DNA from: Zootoca vivipara
Lineage: Eukaryota
Reading direction: 5' to 3'
Assembly (NCBI RefSeq): GCF_963506605.1
Contig: NC_083280.1
Coordinates: 84,878,001 to 84,942,000 of the forward strand
DNA length: 64,000 nucleotides
Made by a program: the position numbers and the translations under genes. The notes under the pieces were generated by a model. It had not been told where the DNA came from. It did not search any database and worked only from the letters and a program-made list of their open reading frames with translations. Position 1 is the first letter of the stretch. Each line of letters begins with the position of its first letter. Below, in pieces: positions 3,959-51,065 of the stretch.

Positions 3959-4254
3959 GCATAGACCTTGAGGTATTTTCACAAAAAAGTGGGAAATAGC
4001 TGGTCAATGAATTCCCCAAAGGTGGTGGGAGTTGTTAGTATCCAGGGTGCTTACAACACATGCTTTCATGGAAAAGAAAAGAAAAAAAACTGGGGGAATA
4101 ATTTTATAAATTCTTATTTTGTGAAAAAATAATATATATATTTTTAAAAAATTAAGAATGGGAGAAGCAACACGAAATTCTGCAAAACACCTAGCTTGGC
4201 AGTTTAGCAATTCTGATTTTTAGCACTTTTTCCTAAGCAGGTTAAAGCACTTAC

Positions 4255-15065: not shown

Positions 15066-15169
15066 GCAATTATAGTACTGTACATATGTTTGGCTTAAAG
15101 CAATTAATCAGCAGTCTGGTCTGGTGCAATGCATTTTTTTGTATTTGTTTTCTTTATCATCATTATTTT

Positions 15170-16834: not shown

Positions 16835-16995
16835 ATGGCTGAAGAGTGTGCCTCACTCCCCAAAGACCCTGAATGTTCTGGAACATCCACAGCTGAGACC
16901 CCCACTGTTAAAGATCTAGAACAGCTCCTGAATACTGGGAGGTCTTCCTGTAACCATGTTGATGAAGTATGGCCTAACCTTTTCTTAGGAGACCA
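16835..16995 (+). CDS. DUSP13A: DUSP13A/MDSP-like copy 1, exon 1
   Basis: aggATGg start; [53 protein letters not shown]; donor CA|gtaagt (phase 2). Matches the recalled MDSP N-terminus ([27 protein letters not shown]). Not in the ORF track because it is short. Confidence 0.92.
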
Positions 16996-18489
16996 GTAAG
17001 TATATCTCTGTGGAACAGCTCAGCATTTTTTTGGCAGTCCTTAAGAGCTACCCCGACATAACTATTGCAGCCAAGTCAATGCACCTTCCAAGGAATGTGT
17101 CATTCTGTGATCTGATTGGGTCCAGCACCTTGTTATGCATGACTACCCCTCATTTAAACCAATTGGTCATTCTGACACGTAACTGGTGGTAGGATTGCAC
17201 ATAATCGTGGCTTCTTTGAGAAGACAGTCTTGCAATTAATTGTTACGCAGCCCTAAATTTACAGTATGTACTTTACAGTATGTACCCGGTACTTTATTTT
17301 ATGTGCATTCAGAATGCCACACAGAATCTGGAACAAAATGTTGGATTCCTCAGTGCATCACCTTTCTTCCCACCACCTATTCCTTTAAAAAAAAAAAAGC
17401 AATTTCTAGCCCTCACAGTTGCGGCAACACATGGCTGAAGACCATGCAGTTGGTATATGAAAAAGGCAAAAGAGTTCAGTCAGTGTGGCTTCCATCCCCT
17501 TCAGAGAGACCTAGTCCTCCCTTGTAGCTTCCCATTACCTTTCCCTGACTGCTTCGGTTGCTTTAATTGTCTAGCTCTGTTTCCAGTGTAAACACACTTC
17601 TAGAGTTGTTTATTCATTCTCAGTAACCAATTATCCGTCCCATTGCCGGTGAGGCTGAGTCCAAGATCACCCATTGAGTTTGATGGTTGAGTGGAGATTT
17701 GAACCATGGTCTCCCAGGTCTTAGCTGGGTACCCTAGCCATGACACCACAGTTGCTCCCAAGTCCATGGATGTGCTGAACTGATTCAGTGCCTAACGTAG
17801 GGTTGGAATATCACTTGTAGTTTAATGGTGAACTTTGGACACAATGGAGAGGTAAAAGATTTGGACTATCATAAAAGATGCAGGAGGAAATGATTAATAA
17901 CAGGACCCACAAAGCAGAGGACGGAAGTCCAGGAGATTCCTTGGAATCTTGTTTTTATGTTGTATGTTGGACTGTAAAAATTTAATCTGAAAAACAAAAT
18001 AAATAAAAAAGATTCAGCGCCTAACACTGCAACATGGGGGTTTCCAACAAAGCTGAATGTTCAAATATCGAGGACAGGCAAAATGAAGCCCTTCGCTGCA
18101 CAGCACAAAGTTAGATTTTGGAATCTGCTCTCACAGTGACGGCATCAACTTAGATGGCTTCAGAAGACAATCAGACAAATTCATGGAGGAGAAGGCTATC
18201 AATGGCTACTGTGTTGTGCCATCAGTCTGAGACAGTATGATTCCGAATACCAATTGCTAGAACAGCATGTTGTACTAGATGGGCGACTAGCTTATTCCAG
18301 CAGGCTCTTTTTATGTTCTGAATATTCATTCATTAAATCTTACTGAAATATTTATTCCTTAACGTGGGCTATTTTCTTCATAGAATGTGCGTGGACCCGG
18401 ACCACAAGTTAGAGGGGAAAGCCTGAAAGGAAAATGGGACTCTTCTCGTATCTGCCTGCCTCTCACTTTCTGTTTTGTCTTTTCTTCAG

Positions 18490-18707
18490 TGTTACGGCAC
18501 ACAGCCGATTTGGTTTATGGAAAATGGGCATTAGCCATGTTCTAAATGCTGCACACGGCAAAATATTTTGCCACGAATCCCATGATTTTTACGGCACAAC
18601 GATCGAATACTATGGTGTACCGGCCGATGACCTTCCTGATTTTGATATGACTCCATATTTTTACCCCGCGGCAGAATTTATACACAAAGCCTTGACCACA
18701 CCAGGAG
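18490..18707 (+). CDS. DUSP13A: DUSP13A-like copy 1, exon 2 (general-acid loop)
   Basis: ttcttcag|T...G|gtaggg, 218 nt; VTAHSRFGLWKMGISHVLNAAHGKIFCHESHDFYG...GVPADDLPDFDMTPYFYPAAEFIHKALTTPG. Confidence 0.93.
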
Positions 18708-20092
18708 GTAGGGAATCAACATGCATCACAAATGTTCATATTATGTCGTGTTGTGTTGGGATTTTGGCACTTCACTGCCATTTCTTTCTGGAGAGCTGGA
18801 GATTTTCAGCTCTGGTGTTGCTGTTGAGTTTGCACTTTATAGTCTCATGGACTTAAATAGCAGATATTTAAGGTCATGTTTAACTCTCCCAGAGCAATAA
18901 GTAAACAGTTACCCCATTCAGGACCAGGGAGTCCTCCACACCCACCCGCCCCCTGTCCCCCCAAAACAGTACTTCTGTCTTGTCACGATTCAACCTCAAT
19001 GTATTTGTGCCGGACTTTGGCGGTTCTTACTCAGCATTTCCATATCAGCTGCAACAGATAGCATCCCTCTCCTGTTTCTTCATTTACCATCAACTGCAAC
19101 AGTACTATCCAATTGATTCTCCCAGCTCATAGGACTCCCAAACGAGATTATGGCTGCAGTGCTTGGGAGGCTTGGGCTCCAATCCTAACCCATTTTACCC
19201 AGTAGTAAGTAAGTGAATTCAATGCTGGTTATGCCCAGATAAGTGGGGTAATGATTGCAACCTTTACCCCAGGCCAGTTTTGTTTTGTTTTTAATAAAAA
19301 AAAAGTATTGACCAAGAAAAACAGACAATACACACAAAGAAAACAAACAAACAGCAACAGGCTAATAAAAGTTCGACACAAGGAGATTTTGATAATCAAA
19401 AGAAACATAACAAATATATTAAAGCTACAAATATAAATGAAAGTAACGCAAGCTAAAAAAGAACTTTGTAAGATAAGTGATGTGTAGTGACTGGGAAGTT
19501 AACTTTTTTAATAGAATCAGTTGTATATTGGAATCAGTTGTATACTAAGATCTATACAAACATTGTATCTTTTTTTTCTTTTATGGTGTTGTATTTTAAT
19601 GAATTCAAATAAAGATCTTTTTAAAAAAATTTAAAAAAAGATACATAACAAATCAAGGAGCGAATGAAATGGGTACAATTATAAAATTATAAATGGGGTA
19701 TAAAACACATATTAGGTTGTGCAATAAAAGAGAAAGAAAAAAAGAGGTTTTGCCTGTTTATAGACACTGCCAAACGAAACCATCTTTTGTAGAAATTCAC
19801 CTGTGTTTTACCTTGTGTGTTTGTTTTGCGAGTGTGGATTAAGACCAAGCAGATCTCAAGTAACCAAAACTTCACACAAACTGTGTAGAGCCCCACAATT
19901 TAGGTATAAATGAGAATAAGCTGCCTAATTGGAGACTAAACTTATTCAGTATTACTGTACCTGCTGGGATTAGATGCAACAATTGCTAAAAGTACTTGTT
20001 TAGGAAACATTTGAATTCTCTTTCTTTGGTAGTTTAAAATGCCACCTTTAAAGAGGCTTTAAAAAACAACAACACGTTTCCTTCATTTGCAG

Positions 20093-20316
20093 CTAAAATC
20101 TTCGTGCACTGCGCAGTGGGGATAAGCCGGTCGTCTTCGTTGGTGCTGGCGTATCTCATGATTTACCATCACTTCTCTTTGGTTAAAGCCATTCAGGCAG
20201 TGAAAGAACATCGGTGGATTTTCCCCAATCAAGGGTTTCTGAAGCAACTGAGAAATTTGGACATTCAGCTAAACAAATGCAGCACTAAGCAAGAGAGCAA
20301 GGAAACAAATGCCTGA
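20093..20316 (+). CDS. DUSP13A: DUSP13A-like copy 1, exon 3 (HCxxGxSR active site); full protein 200 aa
   Basis: tttgcag|CT; [24 protein letters not shown]...[35 protein letters not shown]; ATTAAA at 20367. Confidence 0.93.
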
Positions 20317-24022: not shown

Positions 24023-24183
24023 ATGGCTGAAGAGTGTGTCTCACTCCCCAAAGACGCTGAGTGTTCTGGAACATCCACAGCTCAGACCCCCACTGTTAAA
24101 GATCTAGAACAGCTCCTGAATACTGGAAGGCCTTCCTGTAACCATGCTGATGAAGTATGGCCTAACCTTTTCTTAGGAGATCT
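24023..24183 (+). CDS. DUSP13A-like copy 2 (tandem duplicate), exon 1
   Basis: [53 protein letters not shown]; donor CT|gtaagt; 161 nt, same as copy 1. Confidence 0.9.
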
Positions 24184-26116
24184 GTAAGTATACGTCCGTG
24201 GAACGGCTCAGCATTTTTTTGGCAGTCCTGATGAGCTCCCCCAACGTAACTACTGTGGCCAAGTCAATGCTCCTTCCAAGGAATGTGTCATTCTGTGATC
24301 TGGTTGGGTCTAGTACCTTGTTATGCATGACTGTACCGCATTTAAACCAACGGGGCTTTCTGACACGTGACTGGAGGAAATTGCACCTTAACATATTATC
24401 TGATTTTTGCAAGGCAGTGTTGCAATTAATTGTTAAGGAGCCCGAAGCAGTTTATCTTTTTTATTTTGTGCATTCAGAATGCCACACAGAATCTGGAACA
24501 AAATGTTGGATTCTTGAATATATCATCTTATTTTTTCTTTTAAAAAGCCATTTCTAGCCCTCACAGTTGCAGAGACACATGGCTGAAGGCTACAGAGTTC
24601 AGTCGGTGTGGCTTCCGTACCCTTTAGAGCAGTGCTTTTTTCTGGGGGTATGCATACCCCTAAACATTTTGTGAATCTAAGTTTGGCCTCATTGAGGAGC
24701 AGTATTTCAATATGAGGAGGAAAATGAGAGTACTCCTAAACATTTTTTTAAAATAGAAAAAAAGCTTTAGAGAGACCCAGTCCTCCCTTGTAGCTTCTCA
24801 TTGCCTTTCCCTGGCTGTTTGGGTCGTTTCAATTGCCTCGCTCTAACTCCAGCGTAAACCCATGTCTAGACTTGTTTATTCATTTCCAGGCTTTATAGAT
24901 CTGTCCAGTTCTGGTGAGGCTGAGCCCACAGACGTTTAGGGAATAAGCAAGCCCAGCGAGCATTCTCAGGCTGATGGTATCCAGGCAGGGATGACAGGGT
25001 TTCTGTCCAAGGTCAGGAACCATGAACTGGCAAACAAGGGCAAAAGACATGGAAAGATCACTGGGAGCAAACCAGCTATTTCAACAGATTCCTTGGTCTT
25101 TTTTTTAGTCCATGGACCTGCCCACCTCCTCCTGGCTCCACCTGCTTCCCAGGGACCATAGCAATTTAAAGGGACTGTCCTGCAGCCTGGAATCTAGCAT
25201 GCCACCATCTCGCTTCTATTCTCTGTTGGCTGCGTTGTCCGTTGTTATGATCTTGGGGAGTAGGAGGCCCTACCGTCTCAAGGGAAATTGGCTCAGGGGA
25301 TTCTGTACTAGGGTCTCATTTAAATATTACATTTATACCCTGCTTCTCTTCCAAGGGACTCAAGATGGCCTACACAATACTTCCCACTCCCCATTTTATC
25401 CTCCCAATAAACCAGTGGGGCAGGTTAAGGCTGAGAATTGGTGAATGGCCAAACTCACCCAGTAGGCTACATGACTGAGTGGGGATTTGAACCCTGGTCT
25501 CCCAGGTCCTAGCCTGACCCTCTAACCACTAGACCACACTGGCTCCCAAGTCCATTGATGCACTTAATGGATTTAGTGCCTAACCCTAAAACTCAGGGAC
25601 ATCTAAGGAAGCCAGATGATGGAAGATTCAGGACAAACAAAGTACTTCTTCATATAAGACATTAAATTATGGGATCTGCTCCCACAAATAGCAGTGATAG
25701 CCACACCCTTGGATGGCTTTCAAAGAGAATTGGGCAAATTCATGGAGGACAAGGCTATCAATGGCTGCTGACCCTGATGGCTATGTTCTCCCATCCCTGT
25801 CTGAGGCAGTATGATTCTGAATACCAATTACTGGAAACCACAGGAGGGGAGAATGAAGTTGAGCTCAGATCCTGCTTCGTGCTTCCCAGAGACATCTAAG
25901 TGGCCAGCATGTTGGACTAGATGGACCATTGACTTATTCCAGAATGTTCATTCATTACATCATAATTGAATTTTCTGTTCCCTAACACGGGATATTTTCT
26001 CCATACCATGAGTGGATCTGAGCCACAAATCAGAGGGAGAAGCCTGAAAGGAAAATGGGATTCTTCTCCTACCTGTTAGTCTGTCTCTCACTTTCTGTTT
26101 CATTCTTTTTCTTCAG

Positions 26117-26334
26117 TGTTATGGCTCACAACAGATTTGGTTTGTGGAAAATGGGCATCAGCCATGTTTTAAACGCTACACACGGCAAAATATTTTCCCA
26201 AGGATCCCACGAGTTTTATGGCACAACGATCGAATACTATGGTGTACCAGCCTTTGACCTTCCCGATTTTGATATGACTCCATATTTTTACCCTGCTGCA
26301 GAATTCATACACAAAGCCTTGACCACACCAGGAG
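26117..26334 (+). CDS. DUSP13A-like copy 2, exon 2
   Basis: cttcag|T...G|gtaggg, 218 nt; VMAHNRFGLWKMGISHVLNATHGKIFSQGSHEFYG...GVPAFDLPDFDMTPYFYPAAEFIHKALTTPG. Confidence 0.92.
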
Positions 26335-26817
26335 GTAGGGATTCAACATGCGTCACAAATGTTCATATTATGTTGTGCTGTGTTGGCAGTTTGGCACTTC
26401 ACTGCCATTTCTTTCTGGAGAGCTGGAGATTAGGGGAAGATTTTCAGCTCTCTCATTGCTTTTGGATTTACTTGATGGCCGCCTTGTGGTGATCACTGAG
26501 CACCTTTGGCCCTTTGCCTCTTCCCCGACCTTCTCTTTGTTTTCGGGCAGATATCCTTTGCTTCTTAAATTCTCTGCCTACCTCCTGCTTCCATTTCTCT
26601 ACTCATATGTATGCTCATCTGGTTCACATTTCCTTATTATTTGTACATAGCCATAATGTATTGAAGGTTTCAAGTGTCTCCAATGCCTGTGTGTCATTAC
26701 CTGCCCCTCCTCCCACACTTGAGATCCTGATCACCTTGACGTCACTTTGCCATGACACATTGGAAACCACCCATGTTTAAATCTTCTGTCCTATGTCACT
26801 GGTGTGTGTTTTTTTCT

Positions 26818-27195
26818 GGACATGGGTGGCACTGTGGTCTAAACCACTGAGCCTCCTGGGCTTGCCGATCAGAAGGTCGGCAGTTCGAATCCCCGCGATG
26901 GGGTGAGCTCTCATTGCTCTGCCCCAGCTCCTGCCAACCTAGCAGGTGGAAAGCATGCCAGTGCAAGTAGATTAATAGGTATCGCTGTGGCAGGAAGGCA
27001 AATGGCATTTCTGTGTGCTCTGGTTTTCATCATGGTGTCCTGTTGCGCCAGAAGTGGTTTAATCCTGCTGGCCACATGACCTGGAAAGCTGTCTGTGGAC
27101 AAACGCTGGCTCCCTCGGCCTATAGAACGAGATGAGCGCGCAGCCCCAGAGTCATCCATGACTGGACTTAACCGTCCAGGGGTCCTTTACTGTTT
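26818..27195 (+). mobile_element. Sauria SINE, full length
   Basis: tRNA-like head gggtggcactgtggtctaaacc...gttcgaatcc through ggggtcctttac tail; absent from copy 1 intron 2. Confidence 0.9.
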
Positions 27196-27402
27196 ACTGC
27201 AAAAGAGCTGTGAGGTTTTATCACTGCTTGAGAAAAAACAATATAAGAACCCTTGTTGCCAAAAACAACTAGATTCACTGTTCTTTCGATCTTGTCCTAA
27301 GTACATTTTAAAACTGCAGTTTATCCCAGCACTGAAAATTCATCAGAACCCAACAAAGAAAACTGTTAAACATACGCACACACAAATACCTGTACATACA
27401 CA

Positions 27403-28620
27403 CAGTGCTTTTTTCTGGGGAGACGCACACATACCCCTAAACATTTTGTGAATCTCACAGGAGAAGAAACTAAAAAAATTTAAAATTTTGGTTGCTTCTC
27501 TAGCATGGTGAATCGTCAGTTCTGCTGCTACCCCCGATGGCGGCTTAATTTCCTTTCCCTGTGTTTCCTGAGTCTCAGGCAGGAGCGAGCATTTACATAA
27601 TGTGTGAAGCAGTGTGGAATGTGGATGTGTGGTGTTTTACTGATGAAAGTTTGGCCTCATTGAGGGGCAGTACTTCAACATGAGTAATGCATGTTCTTTG
27701 TACTTTTGTCCATTTACTGTATTTATTTTTCCCAATCTATATATATAGAGAGAGAAATGTAAAAAGGGCATGTGGGTATGTCTCCACTTTTCACCAAAAC
27801 CGCTTGACCTATTGAGGTGAAATTTTGACACAACATCCCATGTGAATCTGAAGGATCTTATAAAGTTTGCTAAGACAGATGTTACACCTCCGTCAGATAA
27901 AACCCTCAAAAACCCCTGTTTACTGAACTCACAAATCACCCTCAAGTGCATGCTGGGAGCACAGGAGATGTTGCAAAACAGCACCCTCTAGTGACGGCTA
28001 CACTGGTACTGCAGCTAGGAAAACTCCCCTCAGAAGCTGCATCTCCGAGGGCAGGGCCAAATCATGATGACCCCTAGACATGCTATAACCGCCAAAACGC
28101 GAATACCCCTCAAAGGCAGACCGCAGGAGACAGCCCGAACCCCACCGCCGCTGCACCCACCCGAGCCAAACCACCCCCATTTCAACTCACCCCTTGTTTC
28201 CGCTGGCACTACAACAACCCCGCAAGGCAGTCGAGGCCCAACGGCGGCGGCCGCCGCCCCAAGCCAGACCTCACACACCCAATACCTGACATACAGGCTG
28301 GGGAGTGGGGAGTCACAGGGATGAGCTGAGGGTGGGGGAGGGGGTACAGGGAGGGGACTGGGACCAGTCACAGGGATGTGATGGGGAGGGGGGGACGATG
28401 CCTCATGGGTCGGGACAGGGTGGGGACAGTCACAGCGATGAACTGGGGGTGAGAGGAGGAGGGGCAGAATAGGTCATGGGTCAGGACAGAGTGGGGGGAG
28501 TCACAGGAATGAGCCACAGCAATGTGTGGTCGGGCCAGCTAGTTTGAACTATAAAATGGTGATTTTTCTTGAGTCAAAATGAGAGTACCCCCAAACATTT
28601 TTAAAGAAAAAGATCACCAC
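27403..28620. mobile_element. hAT-like element with a nested GC-rich insert
   Basis: CAGTGCTTTTTTCTGGGG...catacccctaaacatttt start and gagagtacccccaaacatttt...aaaaaga end; short relative at 24630-24766. Confidence 0.55.
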
Positions 28621-28922
28621 ACACACGCATATATACTGAAAATCTGAACAATTATTAATTTCTGCCAAACATTGATTTTAGCTAAACTGTGAAGTAAGCC
28701 CAAGAAGATTTCCATTAACTTGACACAAACGATGTACTGTAGGGCCCCACATTTAGGCACGAATGAAGATAATATCAGAATTGACTAAATTTATCCAGTA
28801 TTACTGTAACTGCAGAAAGTTAAATGTACCTGTTTCAGAAATAGTTGAATTCTGTCTTCTCTCTAGTTTAAAAATGCCATCTTTTAAGATGATAAAAAAA
28901 ATGTGGTCTACTTCATTTTCAG

Positions 28923-29110
28923 GCAAAATCTTAGTGCACTGCGCAGTGGGGATAAGCCGGTCGTCTTCGCTGGTGCTGGCGTATCTCATAATTTACCATT
29001 GCTTCTCTTTGGTTAAAGCCATTCAGGCAGTGAAAGAACGTCGGTGGATTTTCCCCAACCAAGGGTTTCTGAAGCAACTGAGAAATTTGGACCTTCAGCT
29101 CAGCAAATAA
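28923..29110 (+). CDS. DUSP13A-like copy 2, exon 3; full protein 188 aa
   Basis: ttttcag|GC; [24 protein letters not shown]...[23 protein letters not shown]; ATTAAA at 29196. Confidence 0.92.
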
Positions 29111-30184: not shown

Positions 30185-30503
30185 TAGATGACTTTCCAGG
30201 ACCCTTCAAACTCTATGATTCAACTATCTTCCATAACGATCTTCAGAGGAGTACATAATAATAAAATTCAACTCAAAACAAGTATTTTTCCCTTTTGGAG
30301 GAAAAATAGGATGCTGATCTCCACTCGTGCTTATTGCATTTTGTGCTGTCGTGTCAGCAAAGGCTGTTCCCACGTTAGGCATGGGAATGGGCAGGGGACG
30401 AAAAGGGGACAATGTCTCTCAAGAGGCGCACCTGCTTCTCCCTGTCAAATGTCGAAAGGTAACTGGAGCTCATTGGGGCTCTGCAACGACTGTGTATCAT
30501 CGC

Positions 30504-30670
30504 ATGGCAGCGGACGACCCATTTCCAAAGACGACCGCCTCCTTTTGCAAAATGATCAGCCGCAGATCCGCCGCACCCTCCGTCAAAGAGTTGGAGCATG
30601 TGATGGACAGCTGCAGGGTGGAATTAAATGAGATAGATGAAGTGTGGCCCAATCTTTATATAGGCAACAT
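30504..30670 (+). CDS. Third DUSP13-family paralog (gene C), exon 1; possible in-frame upstream start at 30381
   Basis: MAADDPFPKTTASFCKMISRRSAAPSVKELEHVMDSCRVELNEIDEVWPNLYIGN; donor AT|gtaagt (phase 2). The start codon choice is uncertain. Confidence 0.85.
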
Positions 30671-33000
30671 GTAAGTGTGACCCAGAATGAAGCTGTGGCT
30701 TGAGCGTGGGGTAAAAGGAAGGTACGGCAGTGTAATGTTATAACCAATGAATTCACATTGCTAATGGAGGACAGATCTGTGCACGCTGAAGTTAAAGTCT
30801 GAAAAGAGTTTCCATTGTTTTTCTCTGTTGCTCAACATGCATGGGAATTCCTTGACAACCTTCATAACAGAAAGCACATTACAAAAACCTGTGTATTACT
30901 GCGGCAGGAATGAATGATCAGCACAGATGGTCCTATCCCAGCGATTTTATTATGTGCTAAAATTAAAAATCTAAATTCTAGTGAAGGAACCCACCCTCTG
31001 CATTTGGGCTGCCCAGTATGTCCTGTGTTAGATACAGATTTTTTAAAATTAAAAATAAGAATTTACAGTTGGATGAGAACAAGTTGTGATATGCAGACAG
31101 GTGGAGAAAGATGCAAGGAATGTAGACAAGGTAGCCTAGCAGAGTACAGCAATTCCAGTGGCTACTGAAACCTTATATTGGTGAATTTAAAATGCACGTC
31201 TTCAAGAAACATGAGCGGTGATGGACTTTCTAAATTGAAGGTTGAGTTTCTCAGGAACCCTAGCTGTGGGCCTGGTTACAGATTGTTTGTCTGAATATTC
31301 TATTGATTAGTTATGTGTTTATGCATCAAGAATTCGCTGCTCTCTTCATATGCAATTTACAAATACAACTCATGTTGTTTTATCCTGCTCTGTATTTTGA
31401 AAGTATAATCCTCTTGAGTGATTATCTGCATTTTATATTGGCAAAGATACGGTGGATTAATTATACAGTTAGCATGCACTTCTCAACCTTTGATGCATAA
31501 AAAAAAATCAGATCTGAACCTGAGGTAGGAAATAGCATAATGTGCTCAACTGATCCCAACCTTTGCTCTTGAAAGGGATACGCAACCACTAGACTGAGCC
31601 TCTGTTTTCAAGGAAAGATGCTAGAGAGTTAAATGGTTTAGATATCTGCAAGAAGTCACATGGCTGAAGGCAGAGGTTCTGATAAGCAAACACTATCCAG
31701 TCCCATCATGGCAACTGGCACATTCTAAATTCTAAATTCTGGTGCAGATAGATTTCTCACTAATATTTCAGTGCAGCAGTCTGTCCAAGAGAGTCGATCT
31801 GAAGTGGGGTAACTAAAGCCATCCGCAAAATAAAAAAATAAAATAAAAATAAAATAAAATTCCGTGTTCTTGCAAATTTGATACACTCCATCATGTGACT
31901 GTAAGTTCTCCAAGTTACATTATCCCCTACCAAATTGTCTGGGTTGAGCAATCCTATACTCGCCGTTATCACAGAAATGCCACTGCTGCATGCCCGTCTC
32001 TTCTGACGCCCACTCAACCCAGGATGGGAAGCCAGGATGAGTCACCAATCAGGGCCAGAGGCATCCACATGGTGAGCCAAAATACAAGGAGCAAATGACT
32101 TTGGGATGATCAGAGCACTCCCCCAACAGCCCCATCCAGCATTGCAAAATGCTAAACGATACTACCCAGCGCCCACTCCATCAGCTAGCATAGTACTCGA
32201 CAGGACACAGAGCTGGGAAGCTGGTGACAATATTTCAAGCTCTAACAGCGGAAGGGAGAACTGTTATGGCCCCAAAAGGTGGAGCGCCTGGGACTCAAAC
32301 CTCTGCTGCAGACGCCACAGAGGAGCTCCCTTGTCACTCAACCACAGCAATAACCACATGTGGTCATGGCGCATTAGTTCCCTATGCCCCAGTCCCATAG
32401 AATCGCAGAACGTTGGAAGTTGGAAGCCACCCCGAGGGTCATCTAGTCCAACCCCCGGCAATGCAGGAATCCTGCCACATCATTTGGCTCCATTGTCGGT
32501 CACTTCCTGTTACTAGCTGTTAACAGCATATTTTGTATGAAGCTGTGCTATTTAAGATGTCAATGCAGCGCTTTCTATTGGTCAAAACGTCTAATAAGTG
32601 AGCAGCAATAATTCATTAGGACCACATGTTCCAAGCTTGCTAAATAAATCATCCAGGTTCCTCCGATATTTGCCGCCTCAGCCTCTTATCGGAAAGAAGA
32701 GTTATACCTTGTCACCGAACCTTTCCCTTTGCATGCTCCTAGACAATTTAATTCATCTGACCATTTAAAAGCTAGTGTTGAACTAATCCAGTGTTAATAG
32801 AATTAAGTAGATCTGACCACACTGAAGTCTACCCTAGGGAATAGAAAATATTACTTAAAAAAAAACTTTTTTTAAAAAAAATAGTTTCCAGCAAAAAGGT
32901 ACCGAGCTAGACTCCATTAGTTTAGCAACTAAAGGAACTCAGACTTGGTAGAGATCTGGAGGAATTGTTCCACCTTAGGAAGTTTATACTATTTTTGCTA

Positions 33001-33872
33001 TTGTTGTTGTTGTTTAGTCGTTTAGTCGTGTCCGACTCTTCGTGACCCCATGGACCATAGCACGCCAGGCACTCCTGTCTTGCACTGCCTCCCGCAGTTT
33101 GGTCAAACTCATGTTGGTAGCTTCGAGAACACTGTCCAACCATCTCATCCTCTGTCGTCCCCTTCTCCTTGTGCCCTCCATCTTTCCCAACATCAGGGTC
33201 TTTTCCAGGAAGTCTTTTCTTCTCATGAGGTGGCCAAAGTAATGGAGCCTCAGCTTCAGGATCTGTCCTTCCAATGAGCACTCAATGATTTCCTTCAGAA
33301 TGGATAGGTTTGATCTTTTTGCAGTCCATGGGAATCTCAAGAGTCTCCTCCAGCACCATAATTCAAAAGCATCAATTCTTCGGCGATCAGCCTTCTTTAT
33401 GGTCCAGCTCTCACTTCCATACATCACTACTGGGAAAACCATAGCTTTAACTATACGGACCTTTGTCGGCAAGGTGATGTCTCTGCTTTTTAAGATGCTG
33501 TCTAGGTTTGTCATTGCTTTTCTCCCAAGAAGCAGGCGTCTTTTAATTTCGTGACTGCTGTCACCATCTGCAGTGATCATGGAACCCAAGAAAGTAAAAT
33601 CTCTCACTGCCTCCATTTATTCCCCTTCTATTTGCCAGGAGGTTATGGGACCAGTGGCCATGATCTTGGGTTTTTTGATGTTGAGCTTCAGACCATATTT
33701 TGCGCTCTCCTCTTTCACCCTCATTAAAAGGTTTTTTAATTCCTCCTCGCTTTCTGCCATCAAGGTTGTGTCATCTGCATATCTGAGGTTGTTGATATTT
33801 CTTCCGGCAATCTTAATTCCAGTTTGGGATTCATCTAGTCCAGCCTTTCGCATGATGAATTCTGCATATAAA
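33001..33872 (-). mobile_element. Bov-B (RTE) LINE 3' fragment, inactivated
   Basis: RT motif NNLRYADDTTLMAESEEELK and SRDITLPTKVRIVKAMVFPVVMYGSESWTIKKA; (CAA)n tail; in-frame TAA at 33617-33619. Confidence 0.95.
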
Positions 33873-35273
33873 TTAATGCTATACTCATTTATAATCAGGT
33901 GCTGCTAGTTGCAGAAGAATCACACCTATTCTCTTTGGATCTCGTATTCATATGTATTTTTCATCTGCTACTACCTGTATCTTTCCTTGGCCTTTTGTCA
34001 TTGTTAAGGATTTTTCTTGCTGCATTTTTTTTGCTGTTTATCTTAATCTAATTTGTGTATGGGCTCACCCACACTTCTGTTTGCCCCAGTGCTTCCCTGT
34101 GGTTTACAACTGAATTGGACCAAACACTGAATTGGACCTATTTTCCAGGGACAGCCCCGGATTTACAGAATCTGTCCCAGTTTCTGATTTGATCCTGGAA
34201 TGTCCTGCATTTCCTTAGGATGTCCCTATTTTCATCAGAGAAATGTTGGAGGGTATGTAAACAGCTATTGTGTTTTCCGTGAATTGCCGTTCGTTCCAAT
34301 TCAGCGGTAAAAAGTGTGCTTTCCGGGGGAAATCAGCAGAACAATTTCAAAACTGCTCGACCCACGTCTAGAAAGGATCGGACAAGGGGGAAACTGCTAT
34401 CTACTTAGAGACCAACCGTTTCATGCATCTGAAAAAATAACCTCAAACTACAAATGCTCCTGTCACAATAAATCTTATTAGGCTTTAAGATGCCGCAGGA
34501 CTCTCATAAATTGCAACAAAACTGCCCCACTGGAATACGTCAGTATTAATTTATGAAATGTAGATTTCTGATTCGGTGATTCATACTACTCTAGGCAGAT
34601 CTGCCTTACTGGAATTTGATCTTAGCCTACACTCTATTTAAACTTTCCCTGACATTATCAATAGGACGGAAAGAGATGCTGAAAGCAGCAACCCTTTCGG
34701 ATCAGCGGAAATCATTTTGAAATAAGTATCAGATGAGATCCTGCCAGGGGAAGCTTACGCAATCCACAGGATTGTCGTAACATCAGGACCATACCCTATC
34801 CATATGTTCAAGGAGCCACGAATGAAAGGAAGCTTCCCCGTTATGGAAATAAAACTACAAATCCAAGGAGCGATTCTGTTAGTGCAGCCTGTCTTCATTC
34901 TGGAGACGTAGACCTAGTATAAAATTGGCACATTTCACATGCAACATCTGTTTCAAAAGGAAGGATGGTGACTTTCTGTGTGTGTGTGTGTGTGCCCTTC
35001 CCGTCCAGATGAAATTATGACTACATCTATATGAAAACATTATCCACAGCCCTCGGCTCAGAAAGCCCTTCATCTGTGCCAAGTGCAGCTCGGCAGCAGT
35101 TCACGGCAGGACACAGAGAATGCCTTGCGTTAATGATGACACATGGCGATATTTGTGCCCTTCGAATGTGATTCTCCCTACTGGAGGAGGTTTATCCAGA
35201 TAATCGGTTCAAAGTGTGCCCTCTATTGCATCAGCCTTTACAGGAAAATCCTGCAAATCTTGATTGTGTGGCA

Positions 35274-35570
35274 ATGTCCCTCCCCCCCCCAGGAAATAAG
35301 ACGCAAGACACAGAGAATTGAATTTAAGTGGGTGAAAAGGCCACAACTTTATTGGTTTCGGATGTTGAGCGGTATTGGCTTAGGCATTGGAACCTAACCG
35401 GCTATATCCGGCTGTAACCCGTGTGTTACAGTCTGGGAGAAATTAACCACCAGAAAGGAGACACCCGGGGACGGAAAGGCTGAGTTCCCACCTCCGGCTT
35501 GTTTAAAAGAATGGAAGCCCCGCCTCTCGACTGACCCTATTGGTCAGCCCGGGTATGACGGAGGCAGGAA
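35274..35570. mobile_element. LTR-like repeat fragment
   Basis: Shares aggccacaactttat...ggtattggcttaggcattggaa with 50130-50190; family assignment uncertain. Confidence 0.45.
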
Positions 35571-35909
35571 ATCTTTTTTAAAGAAGCACTTTAAAAAAAA
35601 TGTTGGTTTGGGGCAAGGAATTCATGTTTCAGAGGCGTATCTAAATAGCAATTTTCTAAACAGATACCTGAAAGTAGGCAGGGATGATTCCTACCAAGCC
35701 TCTACTGGCAGGCAGTTCCACAGGACAGGTCCTGCCACAGGAAAGTCTTGGCCCACCAAACCTCAGGAAAAATGAAGTTGCAGCTTTGGGTCTGGGATCT
35801 GTGGCAATAATGATAATGATATTTCTCTAGGAATTTGAAGTGGGATTAGCAGTTGTGTTGCCTGCTGAAAGGAATGCATATGCACTCACTATGCTCTTCT
35901 TACATATTT

Positions 35910-35949
<40 letters not shown>

Positions 35950-36032
35950 TAAATAAATAAATCTCCAACGCTTTTTCATAAAACGGAAACTAAGCCCTGT
36001 GTCACTGTTTGCACCATGATAAGATAAGCATA

Positions 36033-36096
36033 CCTGGCGTGCTATGGTCCATGGGGTCACGAAGAGTCGGACACGACTAAACGACTAAACAACAAC
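36033..36096 (+). mobile_element. 64-bp Bov-B 3' terminus
   Basis: ggtccatggggtcacgaagagtcggacacgactaaacgactaaacaacaac with perfect 12-bp TSD AAGATAAGCATA. Confidence 0.9.
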
Positions 36097-36122
36097 AAGA
36101 TAAGCATAACGGATAGAGTGTG

Positions 36123-36125
<3 letters not shown>

Positions 36126-36174
<49 letters not shown>

Positions 36175-36520
36175 AATTTCTGTTTTACATTTTAGAATAT
36201 TCACTTAAACAACCTTAAAATATCAATGACTTCCCTTCCTCTCTTTCCGAGCTTCATTTTGCACAACACAAATCCTTGCATATTTTACATAAACTACCGT
36301 AAACCATTCAGTATTCCATTATGACATCCATCAAAACTTATTTACACTGTTGAATTTATCATAATGCTGGCAGAGTTTTCAAATAGACACAATTCCCCCC
36401 ATATATTCAATAAACATTTCCCAATCTTCTCTAAACATATGTTCTTCTTGTTCTCTTATTCCATATGTTAGATCCGCAAGCTGCGCATATTCCATCAGTG
36501 TAAGTTGTCATTCTTCTTGT
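36126..36520 (-). mobile_element. L1-like 3' end with (TA)n tail
   Basis: Same family as 22371-22770 (atatcaatgacttcccttc...acactgttgaatttatc). Confidence 0.75.
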
Positions 36521-36710
36521 GATGGTTAGAGTGTTGGACCTGGGAGATCAGGGTTCAAATCCCCACTCAGCCATGTAGACCACTGGGTGACCTTGGGGCA
36601 GTCACCATCTCTTAGCTTAACCTACCTCACAGGGTTGTTGTGAGGGTGAATCGGGGAGGAGGAGAACCCTGTAAGTCACCTTGAGATGCTTGGAAGATAA
36701 AGGTTGGTAT

Positions 36711-36991
36711 AAAGGTAAAGGGACCCCTGACCGTTAGGTCCAGTCGCAGATGACTCTGGGGTTGTGGCGCTCATCTCGCTTTACTGGCCGAGGGAGCCGG
36801 CGTACAGCTTCCGGGTCATGTGGCCAGCATGACTAAGCTGCTTCTGGCGAACCAGAGCAGCGCACGGAAACGCCGTTTACCTTCAGGGACCGAGCAACGG
36901 GAGCTCACCCCGTTGCGGGGATTCGAACTGCCAACTTTCTGATCGGCAAGCCCTAGGCTCTGTGGTTTAGACCACAGCGCCACCCGCGTCC
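36711..36991 (-). mobile_element. Sauria SINE with internal deletion, nested in an older tRNA-SINE (36521-37020)
   Basis: aaaggtaaagggacccctgaccgttaggtccagtc...accacagcgccacccgcgtcc. Confidence 0.88.
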
Positions 36992-37076
36992 AAAGGTGGT
37001 ATATGAATGTAATAAATAAATAAGGACATAGGATTCATTTGTTAACCTCCCCACTTTCATATCTGTTTCCTGGCAG

Positions 37077-37294
37077 CACAGCGGCACACAACAAGGAAGA
37101 GCTAAGGAAACGGGGTATTACTCACATATTGAATGCAGCACATGCTGCCTGGGGAAGCAAAGGTAGCCAAGCGTTCTATGGAACAGAGTTCCATTACTAC
37201 GGAATAGCAGCAGAAGACTCCCCAGACTTTGACCTCGGCGTACATTTCCGCCCTGCCTCCGAATTCATCACCAAAGCCCTAAGTGTACCAAACG
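37077..37294 (+). CDS. Gene C exon 2
   Basis: tggcag|C...G|gtgagt, 218 nt; [72 protein letters not shown]. Confidence 0.9.
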
Positions 37295-37300
37295 GTGAGT

Positions 37301-37716
37301 GCCTCGGGATGGAGCAATGGAGAAGTTTCTGAAACAACAAGGGGCTATTAGCTCCGCCTAAGGCATGATGGAGAACAGCAACAACAGGGAAAAGATAGAC
37401 AGAACATTTTACAAGGACAGGAAGAAACACCACGGACAGAATAATTGCCACACACAGGAAGAACAAGGATATAGTTTGAGTGTCTCACTTGTAGTTTTAT
37501 GAATCATCAAATGTGTCAACACGAATAGAAGTTATTAATATTGCAGTTGTTGTAGAAGGGATTATTATTTTGACCGGAATGGAATTGAAATTTAATACAC
37601 CTAAATTATATAATTTGGTATTTGAATGATTGGTATTTGTAATTGTATTATAATTTGGCATTGTTATAATGAGGCTATTATTGGACTGTAATAGAAAACA
37701 AATAAAAAATTATAAT
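37301..37716 (+). mobile_element. LINE 3' fragment inserted at the gene C exon 2 donor
   Basis: 12-bp TSD CAAA(C/T)GGTGAGT at 37289-37300 and 37717-37728; A-rich 3' end. Confidence 0.75.
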
Positions 37717-38023
37717 CAAATGGTGAGTAGCTGCCCTGATGGAACCGCTACACTGACGTTTTAGGTATTAGCAGCATCGTAGCATGGGTTGCTAGTGTCC
37801 AGGGCAGACAAGCAACCATTTTGAGGTAGGTCACACTGAAAGACAAAGTGAATGACTGGCCCTAGGTCACCCAGTGAGCTTAAGAGCCACTTAACTCTTT
37901 GGATTGCTTTAATACAAATCAGGAACCCCCAAAATCCCCTACTGCAACTCCCTCTGGTAGCCTGAAAGAGCTCAAAGGAATTCCCATTTGCTCTATTCTT
38001 AAATCATTTCATCTCCGTTCCAG

Positions 38024-38235
38024 GAAAGATCTTGGTCCACTGCATTCTAGGCAGAAGCAGATCAGCAGCCCTGGTTCTGGCTTACCTCATGATCTGTCAG
38101 AACTTCTCTCTGGCTGACGCCGTCGGAAAGGTCCTGCAGAATCGAGCCATCTCCCCGAACCGAGGGTTCCTGAAACAGCTGCAAGACTTAGATCTGGAGC
38201 TACGGTACAAGATCAGGCTGTGTCAGCTTCTGTAA
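38024..38235 (+). CDS. Gene C exon 3 (HCILGRSR active site, C-terminal CQLL CaaX box); full protein 198 aa
   Basis: ttccag|GA; [70 protein letters not shown]; ATTAAA at 38309. Confidence 0.92.
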
Positions 38236-38701
38236 CGTGAAGAAGAAAGCAAAACGGCAAAGTGACGACACCTGACAGAGAGCTTGGTTTCCGCTGCCAA
38301 TCTCAGCAATTAAACTTGAGGCTGTGTTATTTATCTTCCCAGGAATTTCAAATGCTTAGTTTGGGAGCGGACCTTGACATCTAGAACATCTAGATGCTGG
38401 TTAGGCGCTTGAATTTTCTGGATCTCTTTAAGGATGATTGAATTTGAAGCTTGTAAGATTGAGAAGGGGCCACAGTGCCCCCATAGAGCATGTCACAGGC
38501 AGCTTTCAAAGTGCTTTCAGATTTTTGAGAACGCTCACATATACGTAGCATCTCACTAATCCTGGCTTACAACAACTCTGCAAAGATAAATCATTATATT
38601 TAGATAGATATATATAAGATTGTACAAGTAAGGAGCTTTTTGAATCCTAGCCATTATTGCTGGAAAGCCCTTTGCGCTGAAATAATAGTTATCTAAAGAA
38701 C

Positions 38702-39077: not shown

Positions 39078-39139
39078 AAAGAATGGGAATGCATTTAAAT
39101 CTCAAAATTGTAATGTGTTACTGGGGGTGGGTTTATCTT

Positions 39140-47045: not shown

Positions 47046-47185
47046 ATGAGCCATGCTGGAAACTCTGAAAGTCGAAGCCGTTATGAAACACCAGCACTTT
47101 CTGAATTGCAGCGGCTAGTTTGGAGCAGAGGAAGTTCCGACAACCATGTGGATCAAGTGTGGCCAAACCTCTACCTTGGAGACGG
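47046..47185 (+). CDS. DUSP13B: DUSP13B/TMDP-like exon (first catalytic-domain exon; acceptor at 47001)
   Basis: MSHAGNSESRSRYETPALSELQRLVWSRGSSDNHVDQVWPNLYLGD; donor GG|gtaagg. Resembles recalled TMDP YQPPTLASLQRLLW...NHIDEVWP. Confidence 0.85.
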
Positions 47186-47334
47186 GTAAGGAAACTGAAG
47201 GATTGCATCTTGTTACCAGTCAGAAGGAGAGCAGAAGCTTAAAAATCCTACAAAATAGCAGCAAACAAATTGGGATCTTAACATCCAAATTCCACAAAAT
47301 AGACTAGTATAAACTGGTTCTGTAAACGAACTCT

Positions 47335-47590
47335 GAGAGCCAGTGTGGTGTAGTGGTTAAGAGCAGTAGACTGGTAATCTGGTGAACCGGGTTCGCCTCC
47401 CTGCTCCTCCACATGCAGCTGCTGGGTAACATTGGGCTAGTCACACTTCTCTGAAGCCTCTCAGCCTCACTCACCTCACAGAGTGTTTGTTGTGGGGGAG
47501 GAAGGGAATGGAGAATGTTAGTTGCTTTGAGACTCCTTCGGGTAGTGATAAAGTGGGATATCAAATCCAAACTCTTCTCTTCTTCTTCTA
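47335..47590 (+). mobile_element. tRNA-derived squamate SINE (Squam3-like)
   Basis: A-box GTGGTGTAGTGG, B-box GGTTCG, (CTT)n tail. Confidence 0.75.
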
Positions 47591-47884
47591 TCAGAAATAT
47601 GGTCAAATTAAAACCGACATAACATTTAAATGCTCATTTGAAAAGGGAAAAACACAGATCAACCTAAGTACAACTAAAAGGCCTATGCCTTACTTCCTGT
47701 GTGGGGCAGCCTTGGGTGAAAAGGGAAAGTACCCCTTCCAAGTGTCCCTATTTTCCAGGGACAGTCCCGGATTTATAGAAGCCACCCCAGTTTCTGATAT
47801 GATCCCGGAACGTCTTGCTTTTCCTTAGGACTCTCCTATTTTCATTGGAGACATGTTGGAGGGTGTGAGGCGAGTAAGGGCAAT

Positions 47885-47886
<2 letters not shown>

Positions 47887-47929
<43 letters not shown>

Positions 47930-48335
47930 TATTTATACCCCACCCGTCTGGCTAGGTTTCCCCAGTCACTTTGGGCAGCTCTCAACAGAATATTAATTAT
48001 TATTATCATTATTATTATTATTTAAAGTGATAAAACATCAAACATTTAAAACTTCCCTAAACAGGGCTGCCTTCAGATGTCTTCTAAAAGTCAGATGGTT
48101 GTTTATTTCCTTGACATCTGATGGGAGGGCGTTCCGCAAGACAGGCGCCACTACCGAGAAGGCCCTCTGCCTGGTTCCCTGTAACCTCACATCTCACAGT
48201 GAGAGAACCGCCAGAAGACCCTCGGCACTGGACCTCAGTGTCCGGGCTGAACGATGGGGGTGGAGACGCTCCTTCAGGTATACTGGGTCGAGGCCATTTA
48301 GGGCTTTAAAGGTCAGCACCAACACTTTGAATTGT
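47887..48335 (-). mobile_element. L2-like LINE 3' end with (AAT)n tail
   Basis: FKVLVLTFKALNGLDPVYLKERLHPHRSARTLRSSAEGLLAV on the minus strand. Confidence 0.85.
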
Positions 48336-48656
48336 GAATGTAACACAGAGAGACCTGTAGTCCAAAAGAAAGAGGGAGAACAGAAATTATTCCTCCAACT
48401 GCATGGCAAGGGAGGGAAGCCGTATAACTGATACTGCCTGACAGAGCAGGTTGTAAGGAGCCATGGTCTGGCAAACAGGGAATGTGTTAGGAATTAGAGC
48501 AGGGACCAAAAAGGAGGGGTATTAGTTATGGAGATGAGACGCAGGTGCTCATTGCTTCTTGCTTCCTTGAGGCTCAAGAGGCCTCTTAAATAAGCCCATG
48601 TCAACATGGAGCAGGAGCAGCCGCAGCCGCAGCGACCCTTTATCATCTTTTAACAG

Positions 48657-48877
48657 ATGGGCAGCTCGAAGCAAAGCCATTCTGCAGAGCCTCGGCATCA
48701 CCCACATCCTCAACGCAGCAGACGGGCCGTACAACATCAACACGGGCGCTCGATATTACAGAGACCTGCCAATCGAGTACTACGGGGTGCAGGCGTTTGA
48801 TGACACCTCGTTTGATATCAGCATCTTCTTCCAGGATGCTGCGAATTTCATCCACAATGCCTTGAAGGCTACAGGAG
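48657..48877 (+). CDS. DUSP13B: DUSP13B-like exon 2
   Basis: ttaacag|A...G|gtaaga, 221 nt; [73 protein letters not shown]. Confidence 0.9.
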
Positions 48878-49398
48878 GTAAGAGGGAGATAGCGGGAGGA
48901 GGAGCGGCCTTCGAGATGCGAGAGGCACTCGGTTGCCAGCTGCGTGGGCCCAAAGCTGCCGCTGTTCCCTTTAATCTTGCCGCATTTAGCAAGGGGCTTA
49001 AGGCTACTTAAGGATGCTTTGCTTAATTGGCCTTTCTTGCTCAGGGATGGGCTTCCCCATACTAGATCTCCAGGAAAGGAGGAGGAGTGGCATGTGGGGT
49101 TGTGACGGCAGCTTTGCATGCAGAACTGGAGCAGGTGAAACTTTTCCTAGGGTAGTGATAGTAGGTGGCGTGGATAGCGTTGCTTGATTAATTTCTCCCT
49201 GTCTGGCTGAAGTTGAAGCTGCAGAAGCAAGGCTAGTTTTGAAAAAAGCAGGAAGTTATTCCCGTCTCTCAAATCCTACATAAAAAGTTATTGGGCTATC
49301 AACCAAGCTGAGAATTTTTAAAGTTGATTAACCACCTCTCTTCTCGTTGGCCAATGCTGACTTTACATAAACATGCATAACTCAACCATCTCGTTGTA

Positions 49399-49785
49399 GG
49401 GATGTGGGTGGCGCTGTGATCTAAACCATGGAGCCTCTTGGGCTTGCCGATCAGAAGGTCGGTGGTTCAAATCCACAGGATGGGGTGAGCTTCCATGGCT
49501 CTGTCCCAGCTCCTGCCAACCTAGCAGTTTGAAAGCATACCAGTGCAAGTAGATAAATACGTACCGCTGTGGCAAGAAGGTAAACAGCGTTTCCGTGCGC
49601 TCAGTTTCCGTCACGGTCTTCCGTTGCGCTAGAAGCGGTTTAGTCATGCTGGTCACATGACCCAGAAAGCTGCCTGTGGACAAACGCCAGCTCCCTCGGC
49701 CTGAAAGCGAGATGAGCGCCGCAACCCCATAGCCGCCTTTGACTGGACTTAACTGTCCAGGGGTCCCTTTACCTTGATCTTTACC
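49399..49785 (+). mobile_element. Sauria SINE with ~60-bp flanking direct repeat
   Basis: Full SINE; flanks 49341-49400 and 49786-49845 match at 54/60 positions. Confidence 0.9.
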
Positions 49786-50853
49786 TTCTCATTGGCCAAT
49801 GCTGACTTTACATAAACATGCGTAACTCAAGTTTCTCATTGTAGGTTTCTTTTTACGATAACCCAGTGCAGGGCTTCTAAAGCTCACCACCAGTACATAG
49901 AATTAGCAGGAGGAACTGCATCTCATCATTGACCCTGGGTGTTGTATGGAGTCCCGTTCTGCCTCCGTCCTGGAATCTTCAATCTTTTCCAGGGTATCTT
50001 CAGATGGGTGTACCTTCAGGGAGAGAAATCCTCCCCACAATGACTATTACATGTCAAGGCCCCGAGGCCTCCCCCTTTATGTTGAATAATAACACATGGG
50101 CATTGTATATTAGGTTAATGGGCAAAATTTAGGCCACAACTTTATGGGTTACAGAATGTGAGTGGTATTGGCTTAGGCATTGGAATTGAACCGACTATAT
50201 CTGACTCCTGCCCGTCATGCAGGAAGTCTCACAAGGGTTAAACCACCAGTAGGGGGAGCCCTGTTGATGTACACACCAACTCAGAGCTCCCCCAGGGTCA
50301 CTGGAAGGTCGTGCCATGGCCCTAGCCTCCACCTGGGCTTCGGACAGGAACCACGACCCCCAGATTCCTTTAATGGAATACCCTTTAAAATGGAGGGCCA
50401 CACCTCCCCTCCCCCAAACCAGGCTTTACCAATGCCTAACCGCCAAACCTCACAAAAGTTGTGACGATTGCTACGAGGTAGGTGAAAACCAAATGGCCGG
50501 TGCCAATTTGCCAAGTGGAAAAATTGCTACCAGGCTCCTCAATGGCGACCAACTGAAGTCCATAGCAAGGCCAATATGACGAACGCATGAAAAGAGGGCA
50601 AACCAGAAGGGAGACCCCCGGGCCACATGGCTGCTTATAAAGGGGTAAGCCATGCTATTTTTCTAGAGAAAGAGGTGCTGGAACTCACAATGAACATTTC
50701 CCTTGTTCTCTTATAATGGCAATGTCACCCACCTGAGAGGAGCCGGAACTGAGTTGCAATGAGTTCTGGCCGGGGGCAGGGGGGGCAAGCACTGGTCTTA
50801 ACCTTCTATGTTCCACATCAATTAAATGCTGTTCTTTTGTTATTTCTCTGCAG

Positions 50854-51065
50854 GCAAGGTATTTGTCCATTGTGCCATGGGGTTAAGCCGCTCAGCCACT
50901 TTAGTGCTGGCCTATTTGATGATCCATGAAAACCTGACACTCGTGGAGGCCTTGAAATCGGTGGATTCAAACCGAGGGATTTGCCCAAACACAGGGTTCC
51001 TCATCCAGCTACGAGCCCTGGACATCAGATTAAATAATGAGAAGAGAGGTGCCTCGGCACTCTGA
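50854..51065 (+). CDS. DUSP13B: DUSP13B-like exon 3; protein 190 aa from ATG 47046
   Basis: ctctgcag|GC; [57 protein letters not shown]...*. TMDP-type HCAMG, EN.TLVEA and ICPN motifs. Confidence 0.9.

Follow-up and report, generated by a model that had tools for sequence, protein, structure and literature searches.

Does the DUSP13 locus of Zootoca vivipara hold a phosphatase gene that is neither DUSP13A nor DUSP13B, and is the product of that gene tethered to membranes by a lipid? Both questions are raised by a dual-specificity phosphatase (DUSP) gene on the plus strand of a 64,000-nucleotide stretch of Z. vivipara DNA (NCBI RefSeq assembly GCF_963506605.1, contig NC_083280.1, positions 84,878,001 to 84,942,000), here called the window. 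This gene, which we refer to as gene C, occupies positions 30504-38235, and its predicted protein ends in the CaaX box CQLL. To our knowledge, atypical DUSPs have been described as soluble proteins, with the exception of the N-myristoylated DUSP15 and DUSP22. An earlier reading of the window (hereafter the original prediction) had proposed that gene C is a distinct, uncharacterized DUSP13-family paralog with a geranylgeranylated product. We computed the structure of the gene, the integrity of its active site, the fold of its product, its orthology, its position in the locus and the depth to which its box is conserved. Taking these together, we consider it likely that gene C is an intact, separate gene of the DUSP13 cluster and that it encodes a VHR-type phosphatase with a CaaX tail, lipid-anchored to membranes.

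Gene C has an intact reading frame and a complete active site

Direct reading of the DNA gave three exons of 167, 218 and 212 nucleotides with canonical GT-AG splice sites, adding up to 597 nucleotides, or 198 codons and a stop; translation exon by exon yielded 55, 72 and 69 complete codons, which together with two codons split by introns again make 198 residues. Exon 1 (30504..30670) opens with the ATG at 30504, encodes a poorly conserved N terminus followed by a ..LDSC..ELN..DEVWPNLYIGN segment and is followed by a phase 2 intron with the donor GTAAGT at 30671. Exon 2 (37077..37294), which lies between a pyrimidine tract with a cag acceptor and a GTGAGT donor of a phase 1 intron, encodes the first half of the catalytic domain, including the general-acid Asp of AED-SPDFD (codon GAC, 37216-37218). 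Exon 3 (38024..38235), entered through a ccag acceptor, supplies the P-loop and the C-terminal helix and runs through the CaaX box to the stop. Positions 38038..38061 encode the P-loop, HCILGRSR, which contains the catalytic Cys and Arg; with the following Ser (HCILGRSRS, 38038-38064) it fits the motif HCxxGxxR(S/T). The protein ends ..ELRYKIRL-CQLL-stop, so that three of the six residues in front of the box, RYKIRL, are basic; the box is encoded by TGT CAG CTT CTG at 38221..38232, and the TAA stop follows directly at 38233-38235. The original prediction had specified three canonically spliced exons, an intact protein of 198 residues, the general-acid Asp, the Cx5R loop and the terminal TGT CAG CTT CTG TAA at 38221-38235, and our reading reproduced each of these.

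The N terminus is less certain than the C terminus. An in-frame ATG at 30381 has a better Kozak context than the ATG at 30504, with G at -3 and G at +4, and we therefore leave the start open: by sequence, translation may begin either at 30381 (239 residues) or at 30504 (198 residues), the C terminus being common to both models. The possible 41-codon extension between the two (30381..30503) was conserved only in lacertids when orthologues were compared.

When the whole library was searched by HMMER with exon 3, and by words with a crocodilian orthologue, a RefSeq protein of Z. vivipara, P0168, was retrieved along with its newer version, P0294 (XP_034994569.2), which covers the three exons without a true mismatch; exon 1 corresponds to residues 42-97 of both versions. 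P0294 is 239 residues long and starts at the 30381 ATG, and its splice sites, last exon and stop are those of the original model. An independent annotation pipeline thus arrived at identical splice sites and an identical last exon.

We searched Pfam and the solved structures with each exon separately. Exon 3 alone matched the DSPc domain (PF00782) with 58.3 bits, where 33.5 is the cut-off; exon 2 by itself gave a weaker match of 17.4 bits, below that cut-off, and exon 1 by itself gave no Pfam hit. Because exon 3 passes the cut-off by itself and the RefSeq protein matches, gene C is not a chance open reading frame. Among the 65 solved-structure matches of exon 3, DUPD1/DUSP29 was closest, then DUSP26 and DUSP13B, with VHR after these; among the 12 matches of exon 2, DUSP26 and DUSP13A were closest, again ahead of VHR. 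The catalytic Cys and Arg and the general-acid Asp (column D144) were invariant in an alignment of 35 orthologues, and every invariant column of that alignment is kept in the gene C protein. An AlphaFold2 model of P0168 built on the same 35 orthologues had a predicted local distance difference test score (pLDDT) above 90 across the domain, with 145 residues at 90 or more, and a disordered segment of 61 residues at the N terminus that includes the N-terminal extension. With this model Foldseek placed TMDP (2gwo) first, at a template modeling score of 0.91 and a root mean square deviation of 1.7 Å, followed by DUSP13A, DUSP26 and VHR. Judged by sequence and predicted fold, gene C encodes an intact VHR-type atypical dual-specificity phosphatase of about 180 to 200 residues with a complete active site, predicted to be active.

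Gene C is a distinct paralogue within the DUSP13 tandem cluster

When the exons of gene C were compared with the window by tblastn, four tandem genes were found, all on the plus strand and with identical intron positions and phases: gene A at 16835..20316, gene B at 24023..29110, gene C, and gene D at 47046..51065. To assign them, we ran reference proteins against each gene. DUSP13A of Anolis and Rhea matched genes A and B best, avian DUSP13B matched gene D best, and the CaaX proteins of crocodile, coelacanth and killifish matched gene C best; the window held no DUSP29 orthologue. Genes A and B, in which every exon is open, are 72% and 65% identical to Anolis DUSP13A, compared with 51% for gene C. 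Genes A and B are thus assigned as two tandem copies of DUSP13A upstream of gene C, and gene D as DUSP13B (TMDP) downstream of it, which agrees with the earlier placement of gene C between DUSP13A and DUSP13B. The order DUSP13A, CaaX gene, DUSP13B also appears in fused gene models of mackerel (P0003), lungfish (P0001), paddlefish (P0159) and gecko (P0004), and outside Zootoca the gene order rests on such fused models only.

For phylogenetic analysis the DSPc domains were excised with a hidden Markov model, only catalytic-domain columns were kept, with the tail columns removed, and a tree of 92 rows was calculated with IQ-TREE under LG+C20 with posterior mean site frequencies (PMSF). The relatives of gene C formed one bipartition, a clade of 42 rows with 100% ultrafast bootstrap and 99% Shimodaira-Hasegawa approximate likelihood ratio test (SH-aLRT) support. 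It held sharks, bichir, sturgeon, paddlefish, two teleost subclades, coelacanth and lungfish and, among tetrapods, caecilian, salamanders, frogs, tuatara, turtles, crocodilians and squamates. Its sister was DUSP13A, with proteins of Mustela, birds (among them Rhea), caecilian, lizards (among them Anolis) and fish together with the relatives of genes A and B; DUSP13B and DUSP29 branched further out. We had considered gene C as an orthologue of DUSP13A, DUSP13B or DUSP29, and rejected each of these on the separate clade and the per-gene tblastn, so that its description as a distinct paralog of the DUSP13 family stands.

No bird or mammal protein fell into the gene C clade, although the same searches recovered the DUSP13A, DUSP13B and DUSP29 of both groups. 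Retention in non-mammalian vertebrates, as first supposed, thus holds for fish, amphibians and non-avian reptiles but not for birds. By the tree and the tblastn assignments, gene C is a separate third gene of the DUSP13 tandem cluster, one that would go back to the jawed-vertebrate ancestor or further. One candidate from outside the jawed vertebrates, P0215, listed under 'Lampetra planeri' on a 36-kb contig, was rejected as a lamprey orthologue: it nested within teleosts beside Scomber on both trees. P0215 is probably contamination of the lamprey assembly and does not count as evidence for gene C in jawless fish.

The names attached to these proteins do not follow the tree. RefSeq labels gene C "DUSP13A", a name that is wrong, the DUSP13A orthologues being genes A and B. 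Other members of the clade are entered inconsistently as DUSP13, 13A, 13-like, 26, 26-like, 29-like, PHS1-like or Slingshot-2-like.

Two bird RefSeq models named 'DUSP13', P0202 of Agelaius phoeniceus (residues 214-251) and P0316 of Molothrus aeneus, carry an extra segment after a full DUSP13A. This segment matches exon 1 of the gharial member of the gene C clade at 21 of 28 positions, compared with 11 to 12 of 28 for DUSP13A; it also matches the clade better than it matches DUSP13B exon 1, and unrelated sequence follows it. From these matches it appears to be what is left of the first exon of a gene that birds have lost.

The CaaX box is conserved across bony vertebrates

Conservation of the box was surveyed in a FastTree phylogeny of 229 domains, 102 of which fell in the gene C clade; in 99 of the 102 the domain ends the protein. 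A Cys stood exactly at position -4 in 87 of the 99. The a1 position of these 87 boxes varied among 15 different residues, whereas a2 was restricted to L (54), I (27), M (3), F (2) and V (1), and X to L (78), F (3), I (2), V (2) and Q (2). There were 25 different boxes in all, and in 71 of the 87 the PNxxF motif started 22 residues from the Cys. Lys or Arg filled a median of three of the eight positions ahead of the Cys, and up to six in teleosts, both of whose duplicates of the gene keep the box. Gene C itself has Leu at both a2 and X, with its Cys at -4, while Anolis and Sceloporus have CQLQ. A substrate of the CaaX prenyltransferases would be expected to show this signature, in which a1 drifts freely while Cys, a2, X and the position of the stop are strictly constrained. 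The terminal C-x-x-L, whose conservation in orthologues had been put forward as a check on the original prediction, is therefore maintained across bony vertebrates.

The 12 proteins without Cys at -4 comprise six from cartilaginous fish and six alternative or partial models. Five shark members (P0188, P0193, P0194, P0196 and P0199) have a longer tail, which ends in a single Cys or in CC in place of C-a-a-X; this could be another lipidation signal or an artifact of where the gene models end. The tree is compatible with sharks branching either outside or among the bony-vertebrate members, and hence with either gain or loss of the box.

Outside the clade, Cys at -4 was absent from 79 of 82 proteins. 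Two of the other three are chimeras that carry a gene C-type last exon, and the third ends in CQKK, which is not a CaaX box. That DUSP13A, DUSP13B and DUSP29 have no CaaX box had been stated in the original prediction for the human proteins, and it holds for the mammalian (Mustela) proteins examined here.

Comparison with known phosphatases and prenylated proteins

The closest known relative, DUSP13A (MDSP, muscle restricted), is the sister clade; it shares the tandem locus, the three exons, the identical intron phases, the VHR-type fold and the active-site motifs, at about 50 to 55% identity. It differs in having a hydrophilic tail without Cys at -4 and the signature RWIFPN where gene C has RAISPN. 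DUSP13B (TMDP), DUSP29 (DUPD1) and DUSP26 belong to the same subfamily and were the best solved matches by sequence and fold, but they form separate clades, lack a CaaX box and are not orthologues of gene C. Lipid-tethered atypical DUSPs are known in DUSP15 (VHY) and DUSP22 (JSP-1), which carry an N-terminal myristate on Gly2 and not a C-terminal isoprenoid; DUSP22 is distant from gene C in sequence (about 38 bits with exon 3).

How the tail would function is best illustrated by analogy with the PRLs (PTP4A1-3), small Cys-based phosphatases from the superfamily of protein tyrosine phosphatases (PTPs) in which a polybasic stretch and a CaaX box set the membrane location (PMC6192704). They belong to a different family: PRLs are marked by a WPFDD loop and by Ala behind the P-loop Arg, a position at which gene C has Ser, and their boxes, which have Q or M as the last residue, are preferentially farnesylated. 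No PRL chain occurred among the 65 solved-structure matches of exon 3 or the 12 of exon 2. A review of the PRLs describes the CaaX box as unique to them among PTPs (PMC6192704), a claim that the gene C clade with its box would contradict for non-mammalian vertebrates.

For the box itself the closest parallel is the C terminus of Rap1B (..KKSSCQLL), a small GTPase unrelated to gene C and comparable in its tail alone, which has the identical CQLL after basic residues and is a proven substrate of geranylgeranyltransferase I (GGTase-I) (PMC7958859, PMC11152559). GGTase-I targets CaaL, CaaI and CaaM boxes, and CaaS and CaaQ boxes are not among its targets (PMC11152559); removal of the box from Rap1B lowers GGTase-I binding about 20-fold (PMC7958859). 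The reading of CQLL as the Rap1B terminus and a GGTase-I signal, which the original prediction had given, is thus supported by the literature (PMC7958859).

A prenylated, membrane-associated phosphatase is predicted

The identity of the box and its pattern of conservation make it a well-supported prediction that the gene C product is prenylated, and probably geranylgeranylated. Expression of the gene in Zootoca, attachment of the lipid, a membrane location and the choice of substrates are likewise inferred. In the proposed pathway, cytosolic GGTase-I would add a C20 geranylgeranyl group to the box Cys, RCE1 would cut off the last three residues and ICMT would methylate the new C terminus. Where X is Q, farnesyltransferase would act in place of GGTase-I; the CQLQ of Anolis and Sceloporus accordingly predicts a switch to farnesylation in these lizards, not loss of the lipid. 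The isoprenoid and the adjacent Lys and Arg residues would then keep the phosphatase on the cytosolic face of a membrane, where it could act on membrane-proximal phosphoproteins.

Which membrane this would be may differ among lineages. Ras and Rho proteins are localized by a two-signal rule in which lipid and charge combine, and on this basis the strong polybasic run of the teleost proteins suggests the plasma membrane, whereas the weaker charge in lizards (RYKIRL) and turtles suggests endomembranes or a mixed localization. Relatives of the gene C product act on JNK, p38 and ASK1, so proteins of the mitogen-activated protein kinase (MAPK) pathway that lie close to the membrane would be the first candidate substrates.

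Alternative explanations

Several observations weigh against a lipid-anchored product of a separate gene. All of the orthologue sequences are computer-predicted proteins, and the database isoforms P0015, P0239, P0155 and P0156 have different ends. Models P0004 and P0007 splice from a gene C-type last exon into DUSP13B exons, and tail-less isoforms of this type may exist. The AlphaFold2 model of P0168 draws the tail as the end of the last helix (residues 216-238, pLDDT of about 90), box included, with no free peptide. Members of the clade from cartilaginous fish lack the box and end in ..FC, ..YC, ..DC or ..CSTCC; an acidic or bulky residue stands at a1 in several tetrapod boxes (CELL, CYMF), which puts the efficiency of their prenylation in question; and the basic cluster before the box is weak in turtles and frogs, with one or two Lys or Arg. 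Finally, the Sceloporus RefSeq isoform X3 (P0302) joins DUSP13A exon 1 to gene C-type exons 2-3. As to transcripts, Logan contigs of 923-1480 nucleotides encode full CaaX-ending proteins (P0243, P0225, P0241 and P0264); spliced transcripts are their probable source, yet genomic DNA with the short introns of teleosts may also account for them, and so we did not count them as proof.

The X3 hybrid suggests that the locus may act as a complex transcription unit like that of mammalian DUSP13, where shared transcripts are known (PMC11274236). The exons of gene C could then be a cassette within one such unit, in which alternative first exons and read-through splicing mix the exons of DUSP13A, the CaaX gene and DUSP13B, and the CaaX tail would be one of several C termini; tail-bearing isoforms could still be prenylated. 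The four genes of the window have common intron positions and phases, so that exon swaps between paralogues stay in frame, and only 1.4 kb separate the end of gene B from gene C. Besides P0302, P0004 and P0007, hybrids were found in Podarcis lilfordi, where P0296 joins exons 1-2 of DUSP13A to an acceptor situated just upstream of gene C exon 1, and in Huso (P0017, P0129, P0161 and P0164), and to judge from these models the cluster may yield hybrid phosphatases. Several of the hybrids stem from ab initio annotations, however, and the CaaX end is kept in all Sceloporus isoforms, X1 to X5. Most RefSeq models, from more than 60 species, are plain three-exon proteins of 182-198 residues with their own first exon and its conserved LDSC..EL signature. 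We therefore regard the cassette as unlikely.

A terminal Cys might alternatively have been kept for palmitoylation, for a redox role or disulfide with the catalytic Cys, or for metal binding in a protein that is soluble. The terminal Cys of the shark members, which stands outside a CaaX context, and the modeling of the tail as part of a helix are in keeping with this. A structural Cys, however, needs neither an exact position at -4 in 87 proteins nor an aliphatic a2, a Leu-dominated X and a drifting a1, a pattern that is the rule by which CaaX prenyltransferases recognize their substrates (PMC11152559), and CQLL itself is prenylated in Rap1B (PMC7958859); we consider such a role improbable. 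It is more improbable still, and by a wide measure, that gene C is silent or decaying in Zootoca and its open frame a recent survivor. Birds have lost the gene save for the exon 1 relic, and the P-loop is damaged in the turtle model of Emydura (P0172). Yet all 198 of 198 codons are open between canonical splice sites, gene C keeps every column that is invariant among the 35 aligned orthologues, catalytic Asp, Cys and Arg included, the lacertids Lacerta and Podarcis retain both frame and box at about 87-92% identity, and other squamates are 66-80% identical with no damage to the frame. A separate, intact gene with a prenylated product thus remains the reading that we prefer.

Novelty and implications

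A full-text search of the literature for DUSP13 in combination with CaaX, prenylation or geranylgeranylation gave nothing relevant. The original description of the gene as uncharacterized holds insofar as no account of it was found in that search, and fails insofar as RefSeq already contains it under wrong and inconsistent names. Gene C is therefore not new as a gene; its separate orthology group, its conserved prenylation box and its absence from birds and mammals appear to be undescribed. A separate clade would explain why its members have been named after DUSP13, 13A, 26, 29, PHS1 and Slingshot, and it would give a clean framework for orthology at the DUSP13 locus. If a DUSP13-type enzyme with a CaaX tail has been retained by fish, amphibians and reptiles other than birds ever since the bony-vertebrate lineages split, prenylated enzymes would gain a second class. 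The prediction is directly testable by standard prenylation assays, teleosts, Xenopus-type frogs and Anolis are ready model organisms for the clade, and the comparison of birds and mammals with the rest offers a natural loss-of-gene experiment on membrane-tethered DUSP function.

In mammalian DUSP13, exons 4-6 lie between the coding exons of MDSP (exons 1-3) and those of TMDP (exons 7-9) (PMC11274236). They occupy the same position as gene C in the lizard and could be its remnants. It is tempting, if speculative, to suppose that jawed vertebrates ancestrally possessed a third DUSP13-locus gene with a lipid-anchored product, the lipid being a CaaX isoprenoid in bony vertebrates, and that birds and mammals lost it independently, leaving non-coding remnants such as the exon 1 relic in the icterid DUSP13 models and perhaps the mammalian exons 4-6; we hold this history to be doubtful as a whole. 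If it were true, the product would be the only CaaX-bearing enzyme of the PTP superfamily besides the PRLs, and the loss would mark a rewiring of membrane-proximal phosphatase signaling in two warm-blooded lineages.

Other features of the window

A candidate polyadenylation signal, ATTAAA, is present on the plus strand at 38309..38314, about 75 nucleotides past the stop of gene C. Just upstream of the 30381 ATG, in the interval 30352-30503, there is an acceptor (..tgtcag) of the type used in P0296; P0302 goes straight to exon 2. The introns and 3' flank of gene C contain what we take to be the ends of BovB-like long interspersed nuclear elements (..GTCGTGTCCGACTCTTCGTGACCCCATGGACC..) and copies of Sauria-type short interspersed nuclear elements in both orientations, at 33000-33880, 36040-36100, 36700-37000 and 38700-39080, and these repeats fit a squamate genome. 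A run of N occupies 42247-42484. On the minus strand at 4251..4832 lies an exon encoding a SAM domain, presumably of a SAMD8-like gene, head-to-head with the DUSP13 cluster, as at the human locus. A GC-rich stretch at 14400-15100 lies between this exon and the DUSP13 cluster.

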